Shown: piece after piece, positions 2,742 to 16,228 of the stretch
Layout: each line of letters opens with the position of its first letter
Position numbering within the stretch: the stretch's first letter is position 1
Assembly (NCBI GenBank): GCA_965644315.1
Contig: CBFFRQ010000082.1
Location: 1 to 16,228, forward strand
From: Caecitellus pseudoparvulus
Lineage: Eukaryota > Protista > Bigyra: Bicosoecida
Reading direction: 5' to 3'
DNA length: 16,228 nucleotides
Made by a program: the position numbers and the translations under genes
Notes under the pieces: model-generated
Told to the model about the DNA's origin: nothing
The model's input: the letters and a program-made list of their open reading frames with translations, nothing else
Databases searched by the model: none

Positions 2742-3245
2742 CAGGGTCGTGTTTTAAGGTGTGGGGCTGCGAATGTGGGAGCCGGACGAGTGTGGCTTGA
2801 GTCACACTCAAGTGTCGAGCAAAGCTGAATGCTTGTTGTCGCCACGAGCACTCAGGTCGCCATCGACGCGCCTGCTGCACAGGGCTCCTGCCCGATGCTT
2901 TGAATAGGTGGCCAGCTTGGTGTTGGAGGTCGTGCTCGGGCGGGGCCGCGAAGCGGTGTCTCGTGGTCCCTGAAGTGCCACCGGCTCCACGCAGTTTGAA
3001 GCGCTTGACCGCCACCTCGTCGAGCCACGCAAGTGTGCTTTTCAAACACAATTCAACCCATGACACGATGCTCAGTCGCCAAGCAAATTACTACAAATCC
3101 CTTTTCAGCCATCGAGCTTCGTTGTAGCTGTTTTTGTTGGCTGGACGAGACGCTTGAAAGGAGCGCTTCCAATCGTCGCAGAGCGACGCACACACGTGTC
3201 GGACTTGAGACGCCCCACGTCGATACAGCGCAAGACAGACGCAGC

Positions 3246-5726
3246 ATGCGTCGCTATGGGTTGCTTCTTGCGGCGTTCTTAACGGTATGCAGCGCTGGAA
3301 AGCCTGCACCTCTCCTCTCTCAAGTTGAGCCGCACCTGCACTTGAGCATGGCAGCTTTCCATCACGGAGACTTGGGAGTGGCTTTGGCTGCGGCCAAGGC
3401 TGCGGTGCGGATGGCCCCCCTTGACGCGATGGTGCACTCAGCTTTGGGGGACATTCTCACGCAGCATGGCATCCAGGCCCACAACAAGAGCAACCACCAG
3501 GCTGCATCGCGCTTCTTCCGTGCTGCGGTGACGCACCACCTTCGATCAGCGAGCCTGGGGGCGCCTTCGTTTGCGTCCGCTCTGGCAGACACTCGGACGC
3601 TTCTGGACAAGATGATCACACACACGCCATATGCTGTGGGAGGGGCTTTGTCCATCTTGACTGGGCCCTGGGTACAAGCGGTGTTGGGCAAGGGCTCCCT
3701 AGTTGAGGCTTTGCAAGAGCACGCGATCGAGCAGCAAATGCTCAGTGAAGGCGCCTTGCAAGAGCTGCAAGACTACAGAGACTACAAACAACGCCAAGCC
3801 GAGGCGAATGGCTTCAATTCGTCTCAGCTGCTGGTCGGCATCGAAGCCAGCGGGCCCAACGCTTGGCTTCCCAACGTGCCAGAGTCAGCATTCAAGGAGT
3901 GGGCAGCGGCGGAAGAGGTGCCCCTGGGTCCACAGGCTGCTCTGGCGGCAGCTTTGTTCGACAATGGTTACATGCGCAAGGCAGTGCAAATGCTGTGCAA
4001 GCCCGACCTGCTTACAGTGAACGTGACGGCAGCGTCTGGCCTGTCCCTCGGCATTGCTTCAATGCCGCCAGCACAGGTCCTTCAAGCGACCACCGCCTTG
4101 CGTGTGTGTGGTGTCGTGCATTTGACGGGTGCAGTGCCCCCCACATTCACCGCTGCCGTTCGCAAGGCAGTGCGAGAGGGGGAGGGGGGGGTGTCTCCTG
4201 AGCAGCTCCTGCAGCTGCTTCAGGCTGACGCCGCCATCGCCAACCCCCTTGTTCACCCGGTGCTGCATCGAGCCATGCAGACCGACTTCTCCACTGTCTC
4301 GCAAGCATATATTGAGGCCGCAGACGACCCTCAGTATGAGGAAGAGCTGCGGGTTGTGCAGAGACTCTCAGCAGACTCGGGAAGCCTGTTCTCACTGGAG
4401 GACCTGCAGGCACCAGCAAGTGGCGCTCTGACAGCCCAGCGCCTCATGTCAGTGTTTGGACCTCCACATGGCGATACCCTTCACCGGGAGAAGGTGCGAT
4501 TCGTCAAGGCTGGGCAGTCCAGCGGGCGTCTAGACGCTGTTGGGGCCAGTGTCACCGCGCGTGGTGCAGCGCAGGACACACGCGGCCCAAACCTCAGCGT
4601 CGACTTCGTGCCTGTCAATGGGATGGTTCCATGGCCACGAAGCCGCAAGACCAATGCCACTGCCCTGGGCCGCCAGCAGGCCGGCTTGGCCTCCGGCGCC
4701 TGGGCTCTGTCGGTTGCACAGTACGCGGCCGCGATGTCCCACACGCAGCACGGATACCTTTCCACAAGCTCCCAGCTGCCAGCATTCATGGTACACGCAG
4801 TGTTCCCACTGGGGGCAGACACTGCCACGGACAAGCGGCTGGACGCAGCAGCTGCCACGAGCCACGCCGAAGTGCCCAAAGCCGCAGAGGGCCGTGATCC
4901 ACCCACTGCAGACGGTAGTGACGCACGAGCAGTGCCAGAAGCATGGCAAGTCGGCAACCCCTCCCCCGGCAAGGCACCCATTGCAGTGGCCGTCGTGCCA
5001 GGATCACACATCGTGTGCATGCCTGACGTCCGGGCCGCAGCCACTGCCACCTCCAAGCACGTCAAGCCCATGCACCCCACCAAGCAAGTGCCCACGGCCG
5101 AGTTGGCCAGCCTCTGCCCTGAGGCCCTGCCCAAGCTCGTCACCCTGCACGTCAAGCGCGGTGACGTCTTGCTCATGGACTCGCGGCTGGACCGCGAGAT
5201 CCGCCGAGGCCCTGGTGCAACGAAGCTAGCCCACAGCCAGGCCTTGCATGTGCTGCACACCCAGCCCTGGCCAGCTGCACAGCCCGGCCACCTGCCGGCA
5301 GTACTGCAGAGTGGTTCAGCGCACGCCAGGCACACTCTGAGTCCGTTGGCTGCCAACACCACCTACCACGCCACGACAGCGAACGCGACTGCAGCAGAGC
5401 GCATTGACCCCGACTCACCTCTGGCGCCACAAGCTGCACACCTGGATGACCTCAACGCGCTGGAGTACGGCTCCACACTGCACGTCGGCATGTTGCCTCC
5501 TGACGCGTACTGGAAAGCGGCGCGAGCGGCAGACAACAGGCTTCGCCGAGCCGAGCAGAACGCCACTACCCTGCATCCGGGTGCGCGGAGTGCAGTGTTG
5601 CCGCTGCACCTGCCGCTGCATCGCTGGTACATGTCATCGGGAACGGGTCCAGGAGACGAAGGCTGCTCGGCTGAGGATCGACGAGCTGGTACGTGTGCGT
5701 GGAGCCAGCACGCCTCGGGTAAGTGA
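3246..5726 (+). CDS. Secretory-pathway protein with TPR-like repeats and a degenerate PhyH-like 2OG-Fe(II) dioxygenase fold (about 826 aa)
   Basis: The ORF track starts at a GTG (3033). ATG 3246 (agcATGc) gives a typical signal peptide, MRRYGLLLAAFLTVCSAG. TPR-like segment: HLHLSMAAFHHGDLGVALAAAKAAVRMAPLDAMVHSALGDIL (about 3333-3460). PhyH-family motifs occur in order: LRVCGVVHLTGAVP (about 4098), HAVFPLGAD (about 4794), VVPGSH (4992-5009), LHVKRGDVLLMDSRL (5145-5189). The 3' end may be altered by an intron at 5719. Confidence 0.72.
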   Translation: MRRYGLLLAAFLTVCSAGKPAPLLSQVEPHLHLSMAAFHHGDLGVALAAAKAAVRMAPLDAMVHSALGDILTQHGIQAHNKSNHQAASRFFRAAVTHHLRSASLGAPSFASALADTRTLLDKMITHTPYAVGGALSILTGPWVQAVLGKGSLVEALQEHAIEQQMLSEGALQELQDYRDYKQRQAEANGFNSSQLLVGIEASGPNAWLPNVPESAFKEWAAAEEVPLGPQAALAAALFDNGYMRKAVQMLCKPDLLTVNVTAASGLSLGIASMPPAQVLQATTALRVCGVVHLTGAVPPTFTAAVRKAVREGEGGVSPEQLLQLLQADAAIANPLVHPVLHRAMQTDFSTVSQAYIEAADDPQYEEELRVVQRLSADSGSLFSLEDLQAPASGALTAQRLMSVFGPPHGDTLHREKVRFVKAGQSSGRLDAVGASVTARGAAQDTRGPNLSVDFVPVNGMVPWPRSRKTNATALGRQQAGLASGAWALSVAQYAAAMSHTQHGYLSTSSQLPAFMVHAVFPLGADTATDKRLDAAAATSHAEVPKAAEGRDPPTADGSDARAVPEAWQVGNPSPGKAPIAVAVVPGSHIVCMPDVRAAATATSKHVKPMHPTKQVPTAELASLCPEALPKLVTLHVKRGDVLLMDSRLDREIRRGPGATKLAHSQALHVLHTQPWPAAQPGHLPAVLQSGSAHARHTLSPLAANTTYHATTANATAAERIDPDSPLAPQAAHLDDLNALEYGSTLHVGMLPPDAYWKAARAADNRLRRAEQNATTLHPGARSAVLPLHLPLHRWYMSSGTGPGDEGCSAEDRRAGTCAWSQHASGK

Positions 5727-5799: not shown

Positions 5800-6462
5800 G
5801 TGCTCAGGAGCTTGCTATTCTCGCAGCAGAGCACCCATGAAACGCGCATGAAACAGCACGACACTTCGGCGCGCCGTGTGCACGCTAACCTTCCTGCCAA
5901 CGGACAGCTCACGCATAAGCGAAGGAAATAAGTGCAATGATTCGAAAGAGCTGCTTAACACTGCAGACAGGTCAATAAAGAGCTTTTCAGCTGGCGCAAA
6001 GTCTCCTCTAACAGTGCTCTTCATTGCTCCCACCAAACAGGCTGGTGCGGAGATGGTGGAGGAGGACACCGTGTCCGCCCTGCCGCTGCAGCAAGAAGCT
6101 ATCAAGCGCCCAGACAATTTTCTCAAGACAGGTCACTGCCGCTGTGAACTAGCGTGCCGAGTACGTCGCTGTAAGCAGCTTTCACACCCGCATGGTGCTG
6201 CCGAGGAGTGGCCTCGCTCTCGCAGCGAGCCCGCCGCCGCCGTCGATTGGAGCTGCCGCAACGCTCGACTACAAATAAACTGCACGGCACCAACAGAAAG
6301 CCCGGCACAAGATAGGATCGACAGCAAAGTACTGCGATCATTAAATTCGTCCTCTGTGCGCGCGCTGTTGGATTTCCTGAGGACTCCTCGCGCAGCCGCC
6401 GCAGCGGCCGCTTGGCGTGTTTGTCACGCTGGCCGGAAACACCAAACAGCTGAAGGCGCACC

Positions 6463-9400
6463 ATGGTGCTAGGTGGAGCCCCAGCACAGGGACTCTTGTA
6501 CCTTGTGTTGGTGCTCTTCGGTACTTCCGCCCTTGGGCTGTTCGTGCGGCAGCACGGCCCAGTGAGTGCAAGCTTGCTCCTTGCCTTCTGCACTGCCTTT
6601 CGCTTCAAGCGCCCGTCACTGGGCACGTGTTCACGGCACCGCGCGCATCGTGCTCAGGATGGGGAAGCCCAACCTCCTCTACATGTCAGACTCTCGCCTG
6701 AAGCTGCCACTTCCTCCCCTCCACTGCGCCGGGCGCTGTTTCAGGCGCCTGCACACTTGGGCAGAGGTGAGAGGTCGCTGCGCGCACCTGGACCCTGTCC
6801 GCGTTTCCAGCCCACAGAGATGCACCAGCACATAACACTGCACTTCTTGTTGCACAGACTTGCCGTTTGAAGATGTTGACGCCATCCTGGATCACGACGT
6901 CAACGCCATCAACGCCTCGCATCCTGCGCTGCTGGCGGCTGCTGCTGCCATCAACGCCAGCATGGCCATCACAGGACTGGGCAGCGCCATGGACCTGGGG
7001 GCAGACTACGACGGTGATGGGGCCCGGGACTGGATCCTGGGTGCGCCCCTGCTTGCTGTGGGGGGGCGACAGGTGGGTGGAGTGTTCTTCCTCTCGGCAA
7101 TGGGTGGTCCACGAGGCGTACCAGCTGAGCGCTTGTGGCAGGCTGGAGATGACTTGGCCACGTCCAACGTCACCATCGTGTCCCTGACCTCCACGGCTGG
7201 CAACGCCAACATCACCGAGCTGGGTGGCACCAGCTTCAAGCCTGCCTTTGGCGCGTCAGTGGCTTTGTTGGGGGATGTGGACAGCAACGGGTGGCCTGAT
7301 GTGGCGGTGGGCGCGCCAGGGGACGTGTTCGGGAAGGACGCCAGTGGCGGGCGGGTTTTCATCCTGTTCATGGGTGCAGGGCCACGTGTGCTGCGGTACA
7401 CTGTCCTGGACCGTAAGACTGTGCCTGGTCTGCGGCCCAGCGCTTTCATCGGGCAAGCTCGCCTGGGCCACAGCGTCGTGGGGCTGCGCGACCTGAACTC
7501 GGACGGCGTGCCTGACCTCGCCATTGGCGCACGCACGACACGGCACACCTGGCTGCGGGTGCCGTTTGCCCGGGGCCCTGAGGTGCTGGTTGTATTCTTG
7601 GACCAGTATGGGCAAGCTCGCAACGTGACACACCTGCACAACCTCGTGGAGGGCGGAGGGCACCAGTACAGCCCCTTCAACCCCCAGGCCGAACACTGGG
7701 GCGAAACACCACCCCGCAGACCAGACGGCACGACATTCGATCGGCAGTACAACGAGCACCACGATGATTGGTTCGGGCTGAGTCTGGCGTACTTGGGGCG
7801 AGGCGTGCTGGCCATTGGCGCTCCAGGCCGCCGCAACGCGGACCGCGCCATGCGCAGCCTGGACGGAACAGTCGTGTTGCTGACGTTGAGTCCCACTGGC
7901 ATGCCGACACGGCTGCACTTGATTGACAACGGTGCCTTTCATGACTTGCAGCTGGCCAAGGCGGATGAGAACCCTCAAATTCGCAATGGACTGGGCATGT
8001 CCTTGGCAGCTGTTCCGCCTGCGAACGGCGATGGCACGATGGACTTGCTCATCGGCGCGCCGCCTACTGCGTTGCTGGTGCCGTTAGATGATGCCTTTCG
8101 GCCCAGTGGGGAGTACTTCAGCCTGAGCCTCGAAGGCGTGCTGTGGCGCCCCAACGCGACTTTGGGGGACACCGTGCCGTCCACACTGCAGGGCCTGCGC
8201 GAAGGGTCAGCTCCAGGCGCGTGGCAGACATGGGCAGCTGGCATGGTGGCGGCGTGGACAAGGGATGACGCGCCACCTGCTCTGGCTGGGCGGGAGGCTG
8301 AGCCGCCACAGCTGAATGCTGCCCTGCAGCTGGCCATCAGCTTGCCAGGTGTGCTGTGGAGCGAGGAGCAACCCACTCGACAATGTGGCTCCTATCTGCC
8401 AACGTACTCAAGTACTTGGACAATGTCGACCCTTGTCTACTGTCCTTCCGCGTCAACAGTTGATCCCGACAGTGTATCCGAGTTTGCCGAGTCCATCCTC
8501 TTCACAGCCCTGCGCTTTCCTCCTGCACCAACACTGGCGTCGCAGCTGGGAGGTGACGAAGAGCAAGGGCCAGCTGTGCTGCTCACAACCCCCACATTCA
8601 TTTCACCTGCCGTGGAGGAGGCCCTCCTTCCCAACGCCAGCAATTCTGAATCGCTGCCACTTCATGATCGCTGGGAGTACGCTGAGGAGGCAGTGTTTGG
8701 CTCCAGTGTGCTCGCGTTGCCGTTCTTGACAGAGGCGCCTTGGCCATCTTGGCTGGAGCCCCAGGGTGACGGAGTTCCCTCTAACAACGACAATCTGCCG
8801 TGGGAGGAGGGGCATGCAGGGAAATGGCACAAGAAAGGCATCCGCATCCTGCTGATTGGCGTGGAGCAGGTTGGCGAGGCAAGTTCTGGCACAGTGGGGC
8901 TGTTGCAAGTGGCGTACGATGCGACTGCGCGCCAAGTGATCGCGTCGCACATGGTGGCAGTGAACCAGACTGCAGTTGGCACAGGGCTTTTGTCTGGAGT
9001 GAAGCTTGGCATGCTTCTGGGGTTTGGTCGCTGCATGGCCTTTCTGCGCGCTCAGCAGAATGACGGGGATACGTGGACCAGGCCGCGAGGGTCGGGGAGG
9101 TTAGTTGTCGCTGCGCCAGAAACACAGCTGGTGAACTCCACCCAAAAGGGAGCGTTGGTTTCCATTCCCGTCACTGGCTTCGAGGTGCAGCCTTCTCACC
9201 ACCCTTCTGGGGGAATGACTGTGATGTCGCCTGAGATGTTCACGAGCATTGAGCCGTATATTGGCCCCATCGCGGATGCAATGACGGTCATCCGCACACC
9301 TCACTGGGACAACATGAAACAAACCGAAGTGGCCGTTGCTGCATCCCCATCAGAAGTATCCTTCACACCATTCGGCGCACTTGCGTTTGTGAGCGCCAGT

Positions 9401-12400
9401 AATTCGCACTGGATGAGCCTGAGTTGGCCAGGTTCTCCAGCCGTCTGTTCGTCTGCGTCAGATGGCTTGACTCGCTTCGGCGCGTCAGTGGAGTGGCTGG
9501 GAGGCAGCACCATTGCTGTGCTGGCGCCAGATGAGACGCAAGTCTGTGCCGGGGTCACACATGGCATCGGATCGGGGGCAATCTACGTCCTGTCCCTGTC
9601 ATTCATCACAAGCTCTTCCCTTGCCCAAGTGCAGACCTGGCACCGCATCTTCGCCCCAGCCATGGCACCCTCGCCCGGAGCAGGCTTCCCAGCCCGCATG
9701 TTGCGGCTTGCAGTGGCACCAAGCTTTGCTCAAGACGGTACACCAGACTTGCTCATCACGACAAGCGGCACTGCAGCGTTGCCACACGCTGGCAGTGGCT
9801 TGCAGGAGGCTGTTCGCACTCCGAACTCAGTGTCAGCTCAGTACTGTCTGCTGCACCTGGACAGCCAGTTCAAGGTGCCAACGTCTGTGTTCTCGCGCCC
9901 TGTGACGTGTGTGCAGGAAGGCATGCCCGGCGCTGTGCCGTCTCACGCTGTCTTGAACGGCTCCAGCTCAGCTGTGTTGATGACTGGCTTGAACGGATCA
10001 GCACCGCATCTTGGACTCGCCACTGCACTGCCACTGGGTGATCCAGATGGCAACGGAGCGTTGGATGTGCTCATGTTGCTGCCAGGCATGGGTGTGTTCT
10101 CGTTGCTCCCCAATGGTACCGTGAACAGCACTGCGGCGCCACACCAAGGCGCGATGATGGCGGGTGAGATCGTGCAGCCTGGGTGGGGCTACATCCCTCG
10201 TGCATACGGCCCACCTGGAGGAGGATTTGGTGTTTCGTATGACGAGCAAGCCGAGTTGGCGACGCGCATTGACCCACTGACTTGGGCGCCAGGGCACAAG
10301 GCTGACTACAACATGGCGCGGCTGTACTTGGCTGCGATGGGCAAGCGCATGCGAGGGTGCTGGGAGACGGGGTCGCAGTCGTTTGTGCCAAGTACTGGGA
10401 CCGTGTTTGCAAAGTACGTTGCTGAACTTCCCCAATTGTCAAGCCCCACAGCTCGTGCGTTGCTGAACGACGCTCTGGGTGAACTTGAGTCAGCCGAGTG
10501 GACCAGTGCGGATGGAGCTCTGACTCTGCAGGCTTGGGTGGGCACCGTGCAAGGGCCCGCAGACATGGACACAGCTGGAGCTGCACTGCTGCGTGACGGC
10601 GAGAGCGATGGCTTGTCTCGTGTGGAACGGAATCTGGAGGGCTCGGTATTGGTGTCAGGAAGCGGCGACAGCAGCTCCAGCTCCAGCAGCTCTGGATCGA
10701 GCAGTGAAGACGTTGAGGGTGAGGTGTGGACATCCACATGGCGAGATGGAGAGGCAGTGTTTCGGAACGCGAGCATTGTCGCTGACGGGGAGGAGACATT
10801 GATGGGGTCTCAAGTCTGTCATGTCCGGAGCAAGCCGTTGGAGTGCGAGGAGGGCGGTGCTTCGTGTCTGCACCGCTTTGCTGCTGTGTGTGGAGAGTTC
10901 AGGGAGCCGCAAAGGCTGGCACGGCAGCTTTCTCCTTACTATGTTGCAAGCAATCTCAATGTCGGGTTGGGCAGTGTGTATGGACAACGGGCTGAGCGGA
11001 CGGCTGACAGCCTGCAGTGCAACTTCTGGGAGTCCAACCTGAACTCCAGGTTCAGCTCCACGACCACCCAGCTGCTTCAAGGCGCCACAGACAAGTACCG
11101 GCCTGGCAACTCCATGTTTCCTGGGGCTTCAGTGAGTGCAAGCAACTCAGCCGCGAATGTGAAGGACTTGCACCAAGCCAGCGCATATTCCCTGGGCATG
11201 TCCATGGCGCCCATGCACGACTTCGATGGAGATGGAGTGGCTGAAATGCTCGTGGGAGCACCCCTGGCTGGAGAGATTGGCCGGAATTATGGCTTAACCA
11301 CTTTCGGCCGAGAGCCTGCTCAACTGCGTCGATCCAATGTTGGCGCGGTGTTCATGGTGCATATGGTGCCAGGGAATCAGTCTGAAGCAGGCACCAAGCA
11401 AGCTGTCAGGACTCCCCGTGAATGGAACAGCGGTGAATACTTCTATGGCTCCACCGGCACGACATCGCAGCACGCGAATGTGGAGCCTGGGGAGAAGGTG
11501 CTGGCAGATGGCATGTACCGTGTGGGGCACTTTGACCGCATCGGGCGACACAGCACAGGCGGACACATGCACCTGGAAGACGGTGATGCTGCTAGTACTC
11601 TTGACATCGGAGCTGAAGGGGCGCAGCTTGGCTGTGCAGTGGCGAACGTGGGCTGGCACAACCACTCTGGGTCGCCCAGACTGACCATGGCAACGGGAGC
11701 TTCAGGCATCGCAGCGCTGACAGGCACGTACAGCAGCTCTGTGAACGGACGTGGTGCTGTGTTGTTGCTGGACTTCTCTGAAGCGGGGCTGTTGGTGGAC
11801 TGGAGCTATGTGGATGTGCTGGATGTGCACATGGAACACTCAGCTGCTCTGCCGCCTGTGCACCCGAAGAACCGCTTCCCGGTCAGCCTGGCTGCAGCTG
11901 GAGATTTGGAAGGCGACGGCACTGTGGACGTCGCGGCAGTGTTCCACGACGGCTCGACACGCAAGCGGTACATCGTGCTGCTGCACCGTGATGCCAACGG
12001 CACTTTCAGCCACAGCTCCCTCATCGCGCCTGCTTCCATCCCTGGCCTGCCGCCATCCTTCACAGCGTACAGTGCACGGCCTGAGATGGGGTTCGGGGAC
12101 AGCATGACGTATGTGGGGCGTGGCGTGGTGGCGATCGCACTGTGGCGGGCCAGTCCACGTGTGCTGGACAAGTTCAACTCTTCAGCATTCAACCCAGCAG
12201 CACCGTACGGAGCATCAACAAGCGGGGCGACGACTCTCTTCCGCCCACAGCACATGAAGGCCGAGACATCACAGAGTACAGCCGGGCTGTACTCTGAAAA
12301 CCACCACCCTGTGACTCGAGAAGGCAAGGGCATGTTGATGCTTGTGCGACTGGGCAGGAATGGCACCGCGCTAAACGCGAGTCTGCTGCAGGAGAATGAC

Positions 12401-15400
12401 ATCCGGCCCTTCGGCATCGATGTGGGCGGCACAACTGTGGGCATCGGGTTGTCCGGGCTGCACCCAGAGCTGCTGTATGGGCATGTGGGGCCGTCATCTG
12501 CAGGGCAAGTCATGGACGACGGCGCTGAGCCAGGAAGTGAAGGCGTGTTTGGAAGGCCGAGCATGGTGCCCAATCCGCTGGGTTTCAGTCAGGAGAACGG
12601 CTTTGCTTCCTCCATTCCAGACATGCTGGTCCAGGTGGATTCATGGCGGCAGAAGGCGCATCCGAAGTGGCGGAACGGCGGGGAGGTGTTCACGGCCAGC
12701 CAGTACATGGACGGCACGTATCGAAGGAAGGTTAATGGGAATCGATGGCCTCTGCAAGGCGATGTGAAGCTGCTGCAGACGAACAACAAGGGATCATACT
12801 ACCAAACCTTCAATGTGAACTGGGGAGCGTTGGCTACGAGCTACTGGAACTTCCAGCCATCAGTCACCGGGATTCCTGACGTATCAATGAACGGGCTGTC
12901 AGGGCACGTCATGCCGACTGCATTCAATGCCTTCAATCGAAGGTACTCGAGCACTGGACCAAGTTCGAGCACGAAGAAGACCACGGCAAGGATGGGGAAC
13001 TTGATGTCTGCTGAGAGAATGTTTGAGCAGTCAATGGCAAGGACAGGCTCATCGTCAACTGTGACAAGGGGTCCGAACATTGGGGGGGTGCTGAGATCGA
13101 CGAGCTTTTCAGCGTCCAGGAACCCCATGCCAAGAAGCGCCCCTTTACGAGAGCTTGCCACAACAAACTCCAGAAGTGACTGGATCCGAGACCAGTCAGA
13201 CTGGTACAGAGCGCAGCACAACGGAAAGGACTTCTTCAGGGATGCAGGGCTGCAAGCGTTCTCAGACTATGTCGGAAACTCGTTTCCATACACAACCGAA
13301 ACTTGGGCAGGTGGAGCTCGCATGCCTCCTGGGGCGACTGTTCCTCCAATGGGTCAGTCGTTGTACTTTCCCCAGATAGCGAACGCAAAGCGCTTCCCAG
13401 CCCTGCAAGCTGGTAAGGCACCTACCTCCATGCCGGTGTCCACAGCGGTACTGTGTCCCTTTATCAGCCAGTCAGAGTTCTTCTACCGCACAACTTCTTA
13501 TGTCCCTGCTGTCAGCCGAAGTTCCTGGTCGAGCGCAATCAATGGCTTCGTGGACAGCCACCTGAAGAAGGAAAGCATCCTGGGCGAGTCCCGTGAGCAG
13601 TACATGACTGGAAGTGCCTACTCAAGCGTGCCTTCAAGGTTCAAGGCTTTTTGCATAGATAATCTTCAACAGACAAATCGCCGGAATGGTCTGGACAACG
13701 TTTGGTCAGACCTCCGCAAGCTCCCGCACAACCTCCCCCATCCACGGGACATCCTCTGGCCACGCATGTTTGGCAACCAAGCCCTGCGGTACTTCGGAGA
13801 GCGCATCCAGCGCCACGCCGAGATCTATGCCGTGTACCTCAACCCAGACGGCTCCGTGCGGCAGAGCGTGCCTGTGGTCAAGGCATCGCCTCTGTACGAC
13901 CGCATGCTGCCCAACTGGAGCAACATCGGCTCCAGCATGGCCCTGCTGCGCCAGACAGAGTCGGGCATGCTGCACATTCTGACTGCAGCGGCGTACATGG
14001 ACGATCTGAAGATGCGGGGTTCCCTGAACACCTGGGGCTATGCCAAGACTTCCAACTTCTACGTGCTGGAGGCATTGCCCGCTCCTCCAACACAGTACGA
14101 GCCTGTGTTGGTGCCGGAACACCGCCTGAGCACGTTGGCGTCTGTGGTGCGAGCGGGCAATGGTAGCTCTGTGCCACCCCCAGCTGAAGTGCTGGCGCCT
14201 GTGTCGCCTTGGGTGCGACCAAGTGTCGTGCCGTTGCTGTGGTCACCTTCTCCGTCCTCTACAGCCACTCCTTCAACTTCAAACACGGCAACTGCGTCAG
14301 TCAGCGGCACGCCCAGCAACACACCTTCATCCACGAGCAGCCCCACCAGCACTGCAAGTCCTTCAGTTTCTTCAGAGGTCACCAGCAGCCCGTCATCGTC
14401 GGTGACCGCCGATGTCACGGCATCAGTGAGCCCCTCGCCCACCTCCAGCACGACAGCTTCAGCCTCTGCCACAGTCAAGAGCGCATCTCCGACTCCATCG
14501 CCCACAGCCTCCGCAACAGGTGCTGCGACACCCACAGCATCATCAAGTGCAGCAGCCACACCCTCCACGACACGCAGTCCTGATCCATCCGTTCCCGCTG
14601 CGCCATCGCAAAGCGCTGCACCTTCCACTGTTCCGGGTGTCACGCCGCCTCCACGTCGAGTGCTACCCCGAGTGACGTACATCGACGCAGCCACGCCTGT
14701 ACTACCGTTGACAGTGCTCAGTGTCTCTGCCTTCACTTCTGCTGCGGCGCTGGTGGACGTGCCTGTGACCTTCCGGGCTCTGGGCGAGCTCACCTCCATT
14801 GGGGCTGCTGTGGCGTCAGTGAAGTACGTGGCCAGTCCTGCCCCTGACCTCCTGGCCTTGGCCAGTTCGGATCCGATCGCAGCTGCTGCAGCCATGGCCG
14901 ACGAACAGGGTGGCAGCCCTCCCTCCGCCCGTGTTCTGGCCCCATCCTTGGCAGGCCCGCTGTCGTTGACAGCGTTCACGTCGCTGAACACTCGCGTACA
15001 GGTGTCTCTCTCTGTGACAGACGTGAGGAGCAGCTCAGACGCGGCGTCATTCCAAGGCCTGTTCCTGTTCAATGTGACTGCCTACTCCTCTGCCTCCTTC
15101 GACACTCTGCTCAGCATTCCCCTCCTCGTACACGTGAAGCTGCCAGCTGGCTCGGCCACTCCAGAAGTCATCGAAGGCTACGCTGTGCCAGATGGAGACA
15201 GCAGCAGCATGGAGCAGAGTCTGACCATTGACAGCAGTGGGACGGCGGACCTGGACTGGTTCCTGCTACAAGACCAGCCCTCACAGTGTTGGCTGTCAGT
15301 GTCCAGTGTGGGCGGCCTTGTGCCGTCACGGGGCGAGCTGCTCGCTCTCGCCCCAACTCGAGATGTCTTGCAAGCCGACCCTGCACTTCGAGGCGCTCTG

Positions 15401-16228
15401 CACGGCACGACACAGCCTGGGAGTGTCAGCACAGTGCGGATTGCGATGGACCTGTCCCAGCTCCCTCAGGGCTTGCACCGCGCTGAGCTGGTGCTGGTGC
15501 TGGGAGATGTGCAGGGCACTGTGCAGACCATTCCTGTGCGCATCTTGGTGGCCACGGTGCAACCATGCCCTGGGCGAGTGCGGGTACCGCCCTTGGCCCC
15601 ACCTGCATCCCTGGGCTCTGGAGCCGCCGCATCAACTGCTGTCACAGCGTTGAGCCTGCGAAACCTTGGAGTGGACCCAGTGGCTGTTGTGGATGCCGCT
15701 GTGCTGGATGGAGATGTGGCCATTGCCCCAGTGGCTGACGCATGTGCTTCGAGTCGCAACAGCACTGATGTGAGCGCGGCCGTGGAGGTGCAGTTTGACG
15801 CGTTGGCCGCGTTGGCCAGTCTGGAGGCAGCGTCCACCAGCTGGCTCAGTGTGGCGCCCATGTTGGACGCGGGCGTGGTCATTCCTCCCTTGGGTGATGC
15901 TGTGGCGCCGCTGTCGGTCCGTATTTCTGACTCCAGCACGCCTGAGCCTGGCCAGTACACTGGGACAGTGCTCATTCTCCTTAATGACACTCGCACAGGG
16001 GCGCTGACTCTCGGAAGCTCAGTGGTGAGTGTTCGTGTGGCGCAAGGCACAGCTGCGCTTGGCCAGTCCAGCCTGCTGCCACTGACTTCGACTCTCAGCG
16101 GGCAGCACCTGCCGCTGCAGCCGTCCACTGTCATCACGTCGCCGTACATCTCAGATGACGACCAGTTGATGACTCCAGATGGTGTGCTGCTTGCTCTGGT
16201 CGTGCTGCGAGATGCGCTGGGCCGACCT
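6463..16228 (+). CDS. Giant secreted/surface protein (>3,190 aa, 3'-partial): FG-GAP/integrin-alpha-like beta-propellers, S/T/P stalk, tandem Ig-like domains. Probable exons: 6463-6561, 6658-6766, 6858->16228
   Basis: Strong Kozak context (caccATGg) and signal peptide MVLGGAPAQGLLYLVLVLFGTSALG. Manual translation shows no stop from 6836 to 16228 (3,131 codons; first in-frame ATG at 6962). The ORF track probably missed it because it has no stop inside the window. Phase-1 intron 6767-6857 joins the signal-peptide frame to the long frame (G|AC = Asp). It contains repeated FG-GAP motifs such as FGASVALLGDVDSNGWPDVAVGAPG and many N-x-S/T sequons. Confidence 0.9.
6562..6657 (+). other. Probable intron 1 of the giant gene (96 nt, phase 0, in-frame, no stop)
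   Basis: Donor CCA|GTGAGT, pyrimidine-rich interior, branch-like TTCAC (A6633, 24 nt from the end), acceptor TGCTCAG|G. The length is similar to intron 2. It is not required to keep the frame open, so confidence is lower. Confidence 0.55.
6767..6857 (+). other. Intron 2 of the giant gene (91 nt, phase 1)
   Basis: Donor GAG|GTGAGA, branch-like CATAAC (A6835, 22 nt from the end), polypyrimidine tract CACTTCTTGTTGCACAG. It contains the TAA (6833-6835) that bounds the long frame. Removing it fuses the signal-peptide exon in frame to the 9.4-kb ORF. Confidence 0.82.
6977..14070 (+). repeat. About 15-17 FG-GAP (integrin alpha beta-propeller) protein repeats
   Basis: Approximate blade starts: 6977 LGSAMDLGADYDGDGARDWILGAPL; 7247 FGASVALLGDVDSNGWPDVAVGAPG; 7463 LGHSVVGLRDLNSDGVPDLAIGA; 7772 FGLSLAYLGRGVLAIGAPG; 7991 LGMSLAAVPPANGDGTMDLLIGAPP; 8696 FGSSV; 9023 FGRCMA..LVVAAP; about 9270 (degenerate); 9476 FGASVEWLGGSTIAVLAP; 9686 FPAR..DGTPDLLI; 10010 LGLA..GDPDGNGALDVL; 11192 LGMSMAPMHDFDGDGVAEMLVGAPL; 11627 LGCAVANVG..ATGA; 11876 FPVSLAAAGDLEGDGTVDV; 12092 FGDSMTYVGRGVVAI; about 12437-13858 (split); 13925 IGSSMALL. 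Confidence 0.85.
10670..10705 (+). repeat. Poly-serine coding tract (SSSSSSSSGSSS)
   Basis: Alternating agc/tcc codons (agcagctccagctccagcagctct) in the frame of the giant gene. Confidence 0.7.
14243..14653 (+). repeat. Ser/Thr/Pro/Ala low-complexity mucin-like stalk (about 135 aa)
   Basis: SPSPSSTATPSTSNTATASVSGTPSNTPSSTSSPTSTASPS...SASPTPSPTASATGAATPTASSS...VPGVTPPP. It lies between the propeller region and the Ig-like region. Confidence 0.85.
14660..16228 (+). other. Tandem Ig-like beta-sandwich domains (one unassigned, two BACON-like, start of an invasin/filamin-like domain)
   Basis: SLTIDSSGTADLDW..WLSVSSVGGLVP..PGSVSTVRIAMDLSQLPQGLHRAELVL..TIPVRILV (about 15150-15555) and LSLRNLGVDPV..SWLSVAP..LSVRI..PGQYTGTVLI..VSVRV (about 15560-16045) follow the BACON-like pattern. 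GTAALGQSSL...LVVLRDALG resembles the VxLRDxxGN strand of invasin/filamin-type Ig domains. Confidence 0.6.

Follow-up and report, generated by a model that had tools for sequence, protein, structure and literature searches.

Our results suggest that the stretch of DNA analysed here, the entire 16,228-nucleotide (nt) contig C82 of the 30.6-Mb, 215-contig genome assembly of Caecitellus pseudoparvulus (hereafter the window), is best read as carrying one copy of a giant gene, complete for roughly its first three quarters. Its product is probably a surface contact-sensing receptor with a diversified ectodomain, one of a multi-copy family in this marine heterotrophic protist. The window holds, either by direct observation or in structure models, a signal peptide, an integrin-alpha-like propeller, a second propeller, a Ser/Cys hinge, a second FG-GAP unit, a mucin stalk and an ASH/PapD-like rod. 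What is new is that there are at least seven intact copies, that their backbone is constrained, that their variable cassettes are old (synonymous divergence, dS, >1), and that a paralogue of 56% identity has taken part in a homogenisation of the head. A marine flagellate that feeds heterotrophically depends on recognising prey and surfaces, and the receptors for this task are almost unknown. With this gene, a well-delimited subfamily joins the emerging class of giant FG-GAP multi-pass receptors; outside integrin-bearing lineages, nothing comes closer to an integrin alpha propeller than the head of this class. It is a striking gene, yet its class is not a new kind, and the pattern of cassettes and conversion is the part worth following.

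A giant frame, its copies and their membrane module

The first-pass annotation, made from the letters of the window, had described a hidden 9.4-kb stop-free frame missing from the list of open reading frames (ORFs) and spliced to a signal-peptide exon; the frame is confirmed, and the exon is supported by comparison. Frame 2 of the plus strand is free of stops from 6836 to 16228 (3131 codons) and reaches the contig end; it is absent from the ORF list because this list omits ORFs running off the source. At a G+C of ~60%, chance does not account for 9.4 kb left open, and the frame also has Pfam-significant content. It lacks a suitable ATG, and the copies are conserved precisely from D-L-P-F-E-D-V-D onward. 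Comparison of the copies supports a candidate signal-peptide exon at 6463-6565, joined at 6858. In a five-copy alignment, an ATG-initiated hydrophobic leader is found in phase in 5/5 copies, the leaders being otherwise diverged. It ends in V-(E/R)-Q-H-G, followed 4-8 bases later by an invariant GTGC donor (6566 in the window), again in 5/5 copies. The acceptor AG lies at 6856-6857, with an invariant CAG before ACTTGCC in all five, and the splice 6565|6858 preserves the frame in each of them. The more distant paralogue on contig C78 also has a leader, with the motif VVEQH.

A longer first exon (6463-6766, with a GTGAG donor at 6767) was rejected as a general model, because it leads to a frameshift in C63 and to a stop in C102. 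The block 6705-6766, which lies within the proposed intron, is kept in the five copies between variable flanks, with GTGAG or GTGCG after it; an alternative donor, a mini-exon and a regulatory element are all conceivable roles for it.

The last kilobase of the window has four further matches in the genome, at 92-94% identity. Exon 2 is collinear with contigs C63, C6, C103 and C102 at 88-92% nt identity, and with the C78 paralogue at 56% amino-acid identity. The collinearity with C63 extends over the whole window, both upstream genes included; C6, C103 and C102 share the gene only, from ~6673-6706 onward. Complete copies are found on C6 and C103 (4130 and 4212 codons). Five further C-terminal pieces and three N-terminal ones, the window among the latter, all lie at contig ends, and no C-terminal-only contig overlaps the end of the window. 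As for the paralogues that the first-pass annotation had proposed to count, the assembly contains at least seven copies, at 88-92% nt identity. More broadly, PF01839 marks at least 28 distinct open frames genome-wide, most of 3000-8000 codons. Some of these giant FG-GAP frames come in near-equal pairs, of 6846/6851 amino acids (aa; C56, C6), 3184/3334 aa (C40, C13), 2448/2422 aa (C6, C1), and 675 aa on both C22 and C79. These pairs may be two haplotypes, or many segmental duplicates in the assembly. The lesson for annotation is that short-read assemblies break up at genes of this kind and that ORF lists pass them over.

The locus is also present in contigs of four DNA sequencing runs, each from its own study, and two are labelled as marine metagenomes. 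Marine metagenome contigs include the flank and the beginning of the gene; one of 6.8 kb has the upstream flank and ends at 6824. In the four runs the summed contig depth rises 3-6 fold at ~6700, the start of the repeated unit, which agrees with a multi-copy gene in nature, summed contig depth not being a copy number.

What follows the end of the window can be read from the sister copies. In C6 and C103 the protein continues for ~1000 residues, with extracellular sequence, a Cys-rich motif of the type C-x-x-G-H-x-G-x-L-C-x-x-C-x-x-x-Y, ~nine hydrophobic helices (by hydropathy) and a basic Ser-rich tail. The Cys-rich and multi-pass module is present in C103, C6 and C78, and the syntenic C63 copy reaches its first 208 residues before the contig ends; the window copy ends at 16228, before that region. 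From the complete sister copies and the syntenic one, we infer that the window copy has a similar module. Of the domains that the first-pass annotation had proposed to look for past the window (TM, 7TM, GPI or cytosolic signalling), the complete sister copies show a membrane part of ~nine helices, beyond the point at which C82 stops. The idea of an adhesin simply held off the cell did not survive, since the complete sisters and C63 continue into this module, and the protein is better described as receptor-like. Many polar and aromatic positions of the ~nine-helix module are invariant across members that are 36-93% identical. Complete copies C103 and C6 are 93% identical up to the penultimate helix and ~30% identical in the last helix and tail, and therefore the cytosolic end differs between copies.

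The affinities of this module were studied in the sister copies. A Pfam scan of C103 and C6, over their C-terminal 1353-3051 residues and with a limit as loose as E 1, found no PF06011 match and no other match to the module, and the PF06011 matches of this genome sit at other loci than the subfamily. The profile of the subfamily nevertheless matches the best PF06011-positive protein, on C69, with an E of 2.9e-13 in a small database. With hhalign, it was aligned to nine PF06011-linked modules of this assembly, of which six exceed the Pfam cut-off and three fall just short of it; the probability was 98% and the E 1.5e-13 for 320 columns that begin at the Cys motif and span the helices. Its neighbours in a protein language model include PF06011 and Ephrin_rec_like clusters of algae and haptophytes. 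These comparisons support a distant homology, short of membership in PF06011 proper, for the sister copies. A profile of the C-terminal 1200 residues found no match among PDB sequences.

A HMMER search with the last 1200 residues before the tail, against 1.84 billion representatives, returned only 74 proteins at E <=1e-3, 11 of them at <=1e-30. The ten clusters of relatives that were looked up come mostly from metagenomic collections, and their only name is 'hypothetical protein'. A word search with the membrane region had a single external match, the protein P0019, which belongs to the same species because it is 98% identical to the C78 paralogue. Three others (P0020, P0021, P0022) show ~30% identity over 1300-1500 C-terminal residues behind different heads: a C-type lectin in P0020 (3368 aa, from an NCBI source) and FG-GAP in P0021. 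Because rod, Cys motif and helices are shared behind these different heads, they would form a reusable receptor chassis.

Architecture of the window

The features of the window are as follows; structures were modelled with AlphaFold2 (AF2), whose per-residue confidence is the predicted local distance difference test (pLDDT).

6463..6565, plus strand: candidate leader (signal-peptide) exon, with ATG, hydrophobic core LLYLVLVLF and motif V-R/E-Q-H-G; ends in phase 1
6566..6857, plus strand: proposed intron of 292 nt, GT..AG, from the five-copy alignment; contains a 65-nt conserved block, 6705-6766
6858..16228, plus strand: exon 2, open to the contig end; its stop-free frame starts at 6836
6872..8143, plus strand: propeller 1, integrin-alpha-like FG-GAP with Ca loops, frame residues 13-436 (Pfam, PDB matches, AF2)
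8144..8587, plus strand: insert or linker between the modelled propellers; pLDDT 20-30 over model residues 400-611, no Pfam match
8588..10144, plus strand: propeller 2, modelled as a generic beta-propeller, frame residues 585-1103; contains variable cassette 1 (8894-9505)
10145..11182, plus strand: inter-unit module with a poly-Ser run (10670-10693), a Cys cluster and variable cassette 2; no Pfam match
11183..14191, plus strand: putative second FG-GAP unit, frame residues 1450-2452; variable cassette 4 at 12725-13705
14192..14656, plus strand: mucin-like S/T/P/A stalk of 155 residues, frame residues 2453-2607
14675-15142, 15140-15553 and 15551-16051, plus strand: three modelled Ig-like beta-sandwich domains of ASH/PapD/MSP type (AF2, VIA, Foldseek)
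16052..16228, plus strand: linker and modelled start of a next domain, cut by the contig end (AF2); the C103 and C6 proteins continue for ~1000 residues

In the window frame, Pfam matched FG-GAP (PF01839) in 4 stretches with an E of 5.7e-16 and FG-GAP_3 (PF13517) with an E of 5.1e-11. Blades were counted from piecewise Pfam scans together with a blade profile built from bacterial FG-GAP proteins. Seven are significant (frame residues ~50, 137, 210, 313, 386, 1454 and 1680) and four are marginal (~910, 1067, 1599 and 2330), and the frame holds five strict D-x-D/N-x-D/N-G Ca-loop motifs. The FG-GAP nature and the multiple propellers announced in the first-pass annotation are retained; its count of 15-17 blades was not reproduced from the sequence.

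An AF2 model of residues 9-1103, of low confidence (mean pLDDT 48, predicted template modelling score 0.43), holds two propellers. The nine best structural matches of the first (model residues 5-428) are all integrin alpha heads (VIA Z 18.7-20.5). In this low-confidence model, the comparison with the integrin alpha5 head gives a Z of 20.5 and a root-mean-square deviation (rmsd) of 4.2 Å over 305 residues. A plain sequence search of the PDB points in the same direction: its 59 matches all belong to integrin alpha (best E 5.6e-07), and the alignments lie on the Ca-binding blades. Between the two propellers, 150-200 residues are unmodelled by AF2. The second (model residues 577-1095, pLDDT 50-78) resembles 6-/7-bladed propellers with Z 16-18 (best 17.9). 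The external relatives found for unit 1, which comprises both propellers, were generic bacterial FG-GAP proteins only, covering at most 34% of the query. In the alignment of unit 1, the C63 and C6 sequences are slightly truncated.

The second FG-GAP unit has matches at residues 1454-1486 and 1680-1733, corresponding to two clear blades, and its language-model features point weakly to FG-GAP families. An ancient internal duplication of the propeller region was considered and rejected: hhalign of residues 20-1100 against 1440-2420 gave blade-sized matches only, with probabilities of at most 16%.

The stalk that the first-pass annotation had recognised is confirmed by its composition, with 45 S, 27 T, 28 P and 23 A among 155 residues (79% S/T/P/A). 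The region beyond it (residues 2555-3131) was modelled from a 17-row alignment with a mean pLDDT of 78, exceeding 85 over most of model residues 50-518. The model shows three rod domains, at model residues 60-215, 215-352 and 352-518. The last two match the ASH domain of CEP192, the MSP domain of VAP and the PapD-like domains of HYDIN (Z 10-11, rmsd 1.9-3.2 Å, ~100 residues), the first is matched within two-domain alignments, and Foldseek finds tandem Ig arrays for the rod (E ~1e-15). The ASH/PapD likeness would be one of fold, kinship being without sequence support. Of the rod of at least four Ig-like domains proposed earlier, the Ig-like nature and the continuation past the window stand, with three complete domains and a partial one in the AF2 model; an invasin, filamin or BACON identity, listed then for checking, was not demonstrated, the modelled fold being ASH/PapD/MSP-like. 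The first-pass annotation is upheld in its overall picture of a giant protein, very probably extracellular, whose several propellers are carried by a mucin stalk with an Ig-like rod.

Two open frames on the same strand precede the gene, at 321-2738 (806 codons) and 3009-5723 (905 codons). Compared with the corresponding C63 frames they show 98.6% and 96.9% identity, and they gave weak Pfam hints (3'-5' exonuclease, E 0.055; TPR, E 0.01). Just upstream of the leader exon there is a plus-strand stop-free frame of 206 codons (5852-6469) without a Pfam match. Between C82 and C63, conservation is lowest in the intergenic stretch around it (88%).

Constrained backbone and mosaic cassettes

All five long copies have intact frames, with a ratio of nonsynonymous to synonymous divergence (dN/dS) of 0.17-0.27 overall. 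In the backbone this ratio is 0.10-0.16 with a dS of 0.20-0.24 in all ten pairs, showing that it evolves under purifying selection. Variability concentrates in a few blocks: residues 687-890 (cassette 1), 1166-1290, 1366-1400, 1964-2290 and 2587-2630, and the last helix with the tail. Cassette 1 exists in two types, one in the window and C103, and the other in C63, C6 and C102. Its dS is 1.1-1.4 between types and 0.14-0.21 within them, to be compared with ~0.2 in the backbone. The copy nearest to the window changes along the gene, from C6 to C103, C63, C6 again and C102. Between C82 and C63 the flanking genes have a dS of 0.03 and 0.09, and the giant gene one of 0.31.

The head behaves differently from the rest in the comparison with the C78 paralogue (46003-59046). 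This protein is 96-98% identical to the copies over residues 20-440 (window 6893-8155) and 56% identical overall. Its dS is 0.17-0.27 over the integrin-like propeller, as opposed to 1.6-3.0 elsewhere, and it falls inside the star of copies in the head-segment tree. This pattern marks a conversion tract of ~1.5 kb at the integrin-like propeller between C78 and the copies. The copies form a mosaic family, with a head homogenised by gene conversion and old cassettes in different combinations among copies. As read from the sequences, the head evolves in concert among the copies, and old cassettes are retained and reassorted. Because the backbone is conserved, the head homogenised, and the cassettes old and variable, the variable part of propeller 2 (residues 687-890) and the insert at 1964-2290 are probably ligand-binding.

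Function and comparison with known systems

Beyond the window, the protein would continue with more beta-sandwich sequence, a Cys-rich ephrin-receptor-like motif, a ~nine-helix PF06011-related module and a cytosolic tail. If this is the case, the stalk and the rod would hold the propeller head tens of nanometres off the membrane, the head would bind particles, prey or surfaces, and the multi-pass module would pass the contact on, possibly as an ion (Ca2+) flux. Cassettes in different combinations would diversify binding specificity. We thus propose that the protein sits at the surface, that it senses contact by means of its module and that the cassettes matter for specificity. More tentatively, the set of at least seven copies might be a combinatorial recognition repertoire, with a constant, converted head and ancient cassettes reassorted among loci and haplotypes, a proposal that we see as possible and well short of probable. 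A unicellular predator would then have giant contact receptors that differ in specificity (prey, kin, surfaces), under a logic analogous to that of variant surface-receptor families, but coupled to a multi-pass signalling module.

Several points weigh against the receptor hypothesis and its evolutionary scenario. The model of the head (unit 1) is of low confidence, with a pLDDT of 48, and the second unit was assigned from its sequence. The window copy stops at the contig end, so that its own membrane module is predicted rather than seen. The relation to PF06011 is indirect, lacking a direct Pfam match or a relative among PDB sequences. No RNA run containing the locus was found, and expression, splice and single transcript are predicted. 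The ligand, the localisation and the ion flux of any member are predictions only. Segment trees are mostly star-like, with support below 95%. Recent gene conversion was sought and rejected: the longest identical tract between copies is 170 nt, and because none is longer the exchange is old, not ongoing.

The protein could instead be a structural coat or adhesion protein, a glue, a glycocalyx or a fibrous appendage without signalling, in which the multi-pass module is a mere anchor. Adhesins typically have such features as a mucin stalk, tandem Ig-like domains and propellers, the Foldseek matches of the rod also include Chlamydomonas mastigoneme and pilin arrays, and the high copy number would fit an abundant structural product. 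We nevertheless regard this as rather unlikely, because a conserved ~nine-helix module with many invariant positions is far more than an anchor needs, and the same module occurs behind lectin and FG-GAP heads in other giant proteins. It is also related to PF06011 proteins, which are implicated in fungal Ca2+ homeostasis (PMC9600462, PMC8618638).

It has also to be asked if the multi-copy mosaic is partly an assembly artefact, caused by haplotypes or co-assembled strains on short contigs. C82 is collinear with the end of C63, flanking genes included, at 97-99% identity there, many copies are placed on short contigs or next to a contig end, near-equal pairs are seen among the other giant FG-GAP frames, and there are many variants in the metagenome runs. 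Yet the flanks of C6, C103 and C102 are unrelated and the leader exons are strongly diverged, the copies on C6 and C78 are well inside contigs of 181 kb and 435 kb, and a backbone dS of ~0.22 over the ten pairs is far above the flank dS of 0.03-0.09. The step in summed depth at the gene boundary, in four runs from four studies, adds to these arguments, and we find an artefact of this kind improbable. Finally, a secreted anchorless form or a decaying copy lacking the membrane module, as might be suspected from a contig that ends before any membrane helix and from the five C-terminal-only and three N-terminal-only pieces that cannot be paired, is very improbable given 3131 stop-free codons, a backbone dN/dS of 0.10-0.14 against every other copy, a syntenic C63 copy that runs into the module, and the fact that contig ends inside repeats are normal for short-read assembly.

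Comparable FG-GAP proteins are known from other stramenopile protists. A 2026 study of Pirsonia diadema, a diatom parasitoid, described 445 'integrin-like' genes with FG-GAP and EGF domains, whose proteins have signal peptides, lectin domains and sometimes several transmembrane helices; expression of these genes is raised in zoospores, and bigyromonad stramenopiles have them in expanded numbers (PMC13524835). Since 'integrin-like' FG-GAP proteins, some with several transmembrane helices, are already known in these protists (PMC13524835), the gene is not the best candidate for an undescribed system that the first-pass annotation had seen in it. Like the complete copies described here, the Pirsonia proteins combine FG-GAP, a signal peptide and Cys-rich EGF-type modules, with C-type lectins in some and several transmembrane helices in some, and are expanded in a marine heterotrophic flagellate. 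They differ in length, at 360-2,680 residues, and their description consists of domain counts alone; the study mentions neither an ASH-type rod or a PF06011-like module nor a near-identical multi-copy subfamily or a cassette mosaic (PMC13524835).

Other systems resemble parts of the protein. The fungal PF06011 proteins are regulators of Ca2+ homeostasis and putative TRP-like channels (PMC9600462, PMC8618638). Those named Flc1-3 and TrpR share the multi-pass membrane module with the subfamily, the relation being by profile and indirect. They are proteins of ~700-800 residues with a small TRP_N ectodomain, in contrast to the 3,400-residue ectodomain found here, and channel activity is not established even in fungi. 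Within the genome itself, the PF06011-positive proteins align with the module of this subfamily, which does not itself reach Pfam PF06011. As for the three domains after the stalk, their modelled fold is that of HYDIN, CEP192 and VAP arrays; these are cytosolic or ciliary, with 7-18% identity to the rod, which has no Pfam match.

The comparison with metazoan integrins bears most directly on the head. As the first-pass annotation had argued, the protein is not a canonical integrin alpha, given the lack of a thigh domain and of a GFFKR motif, the multi-pass end of the complete sister copies and the several propellers. The thigh domain (PF08441) had no match in the protein (Pfam) or in a genome scan, in which control genomes were silent too, and the GFFKR-type motif (GFF[KR]R) was not found in the full sister copies. 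The integrin beta partner that had been considered likewise went unmatched in an exon-by-exon search of the genome with PF00362, and control genomes gave no match either. Complete copies have ~4100-4200 residues and a multi-pass end, whereas integrin alpha has ~1100 residues and a single helix, and several propellers are found where integrin has one. What the two have in common is an N-terminal Ca-binding FG-GAP propeller, and an extracellular head carried on a leg of beta-sandwich domains.

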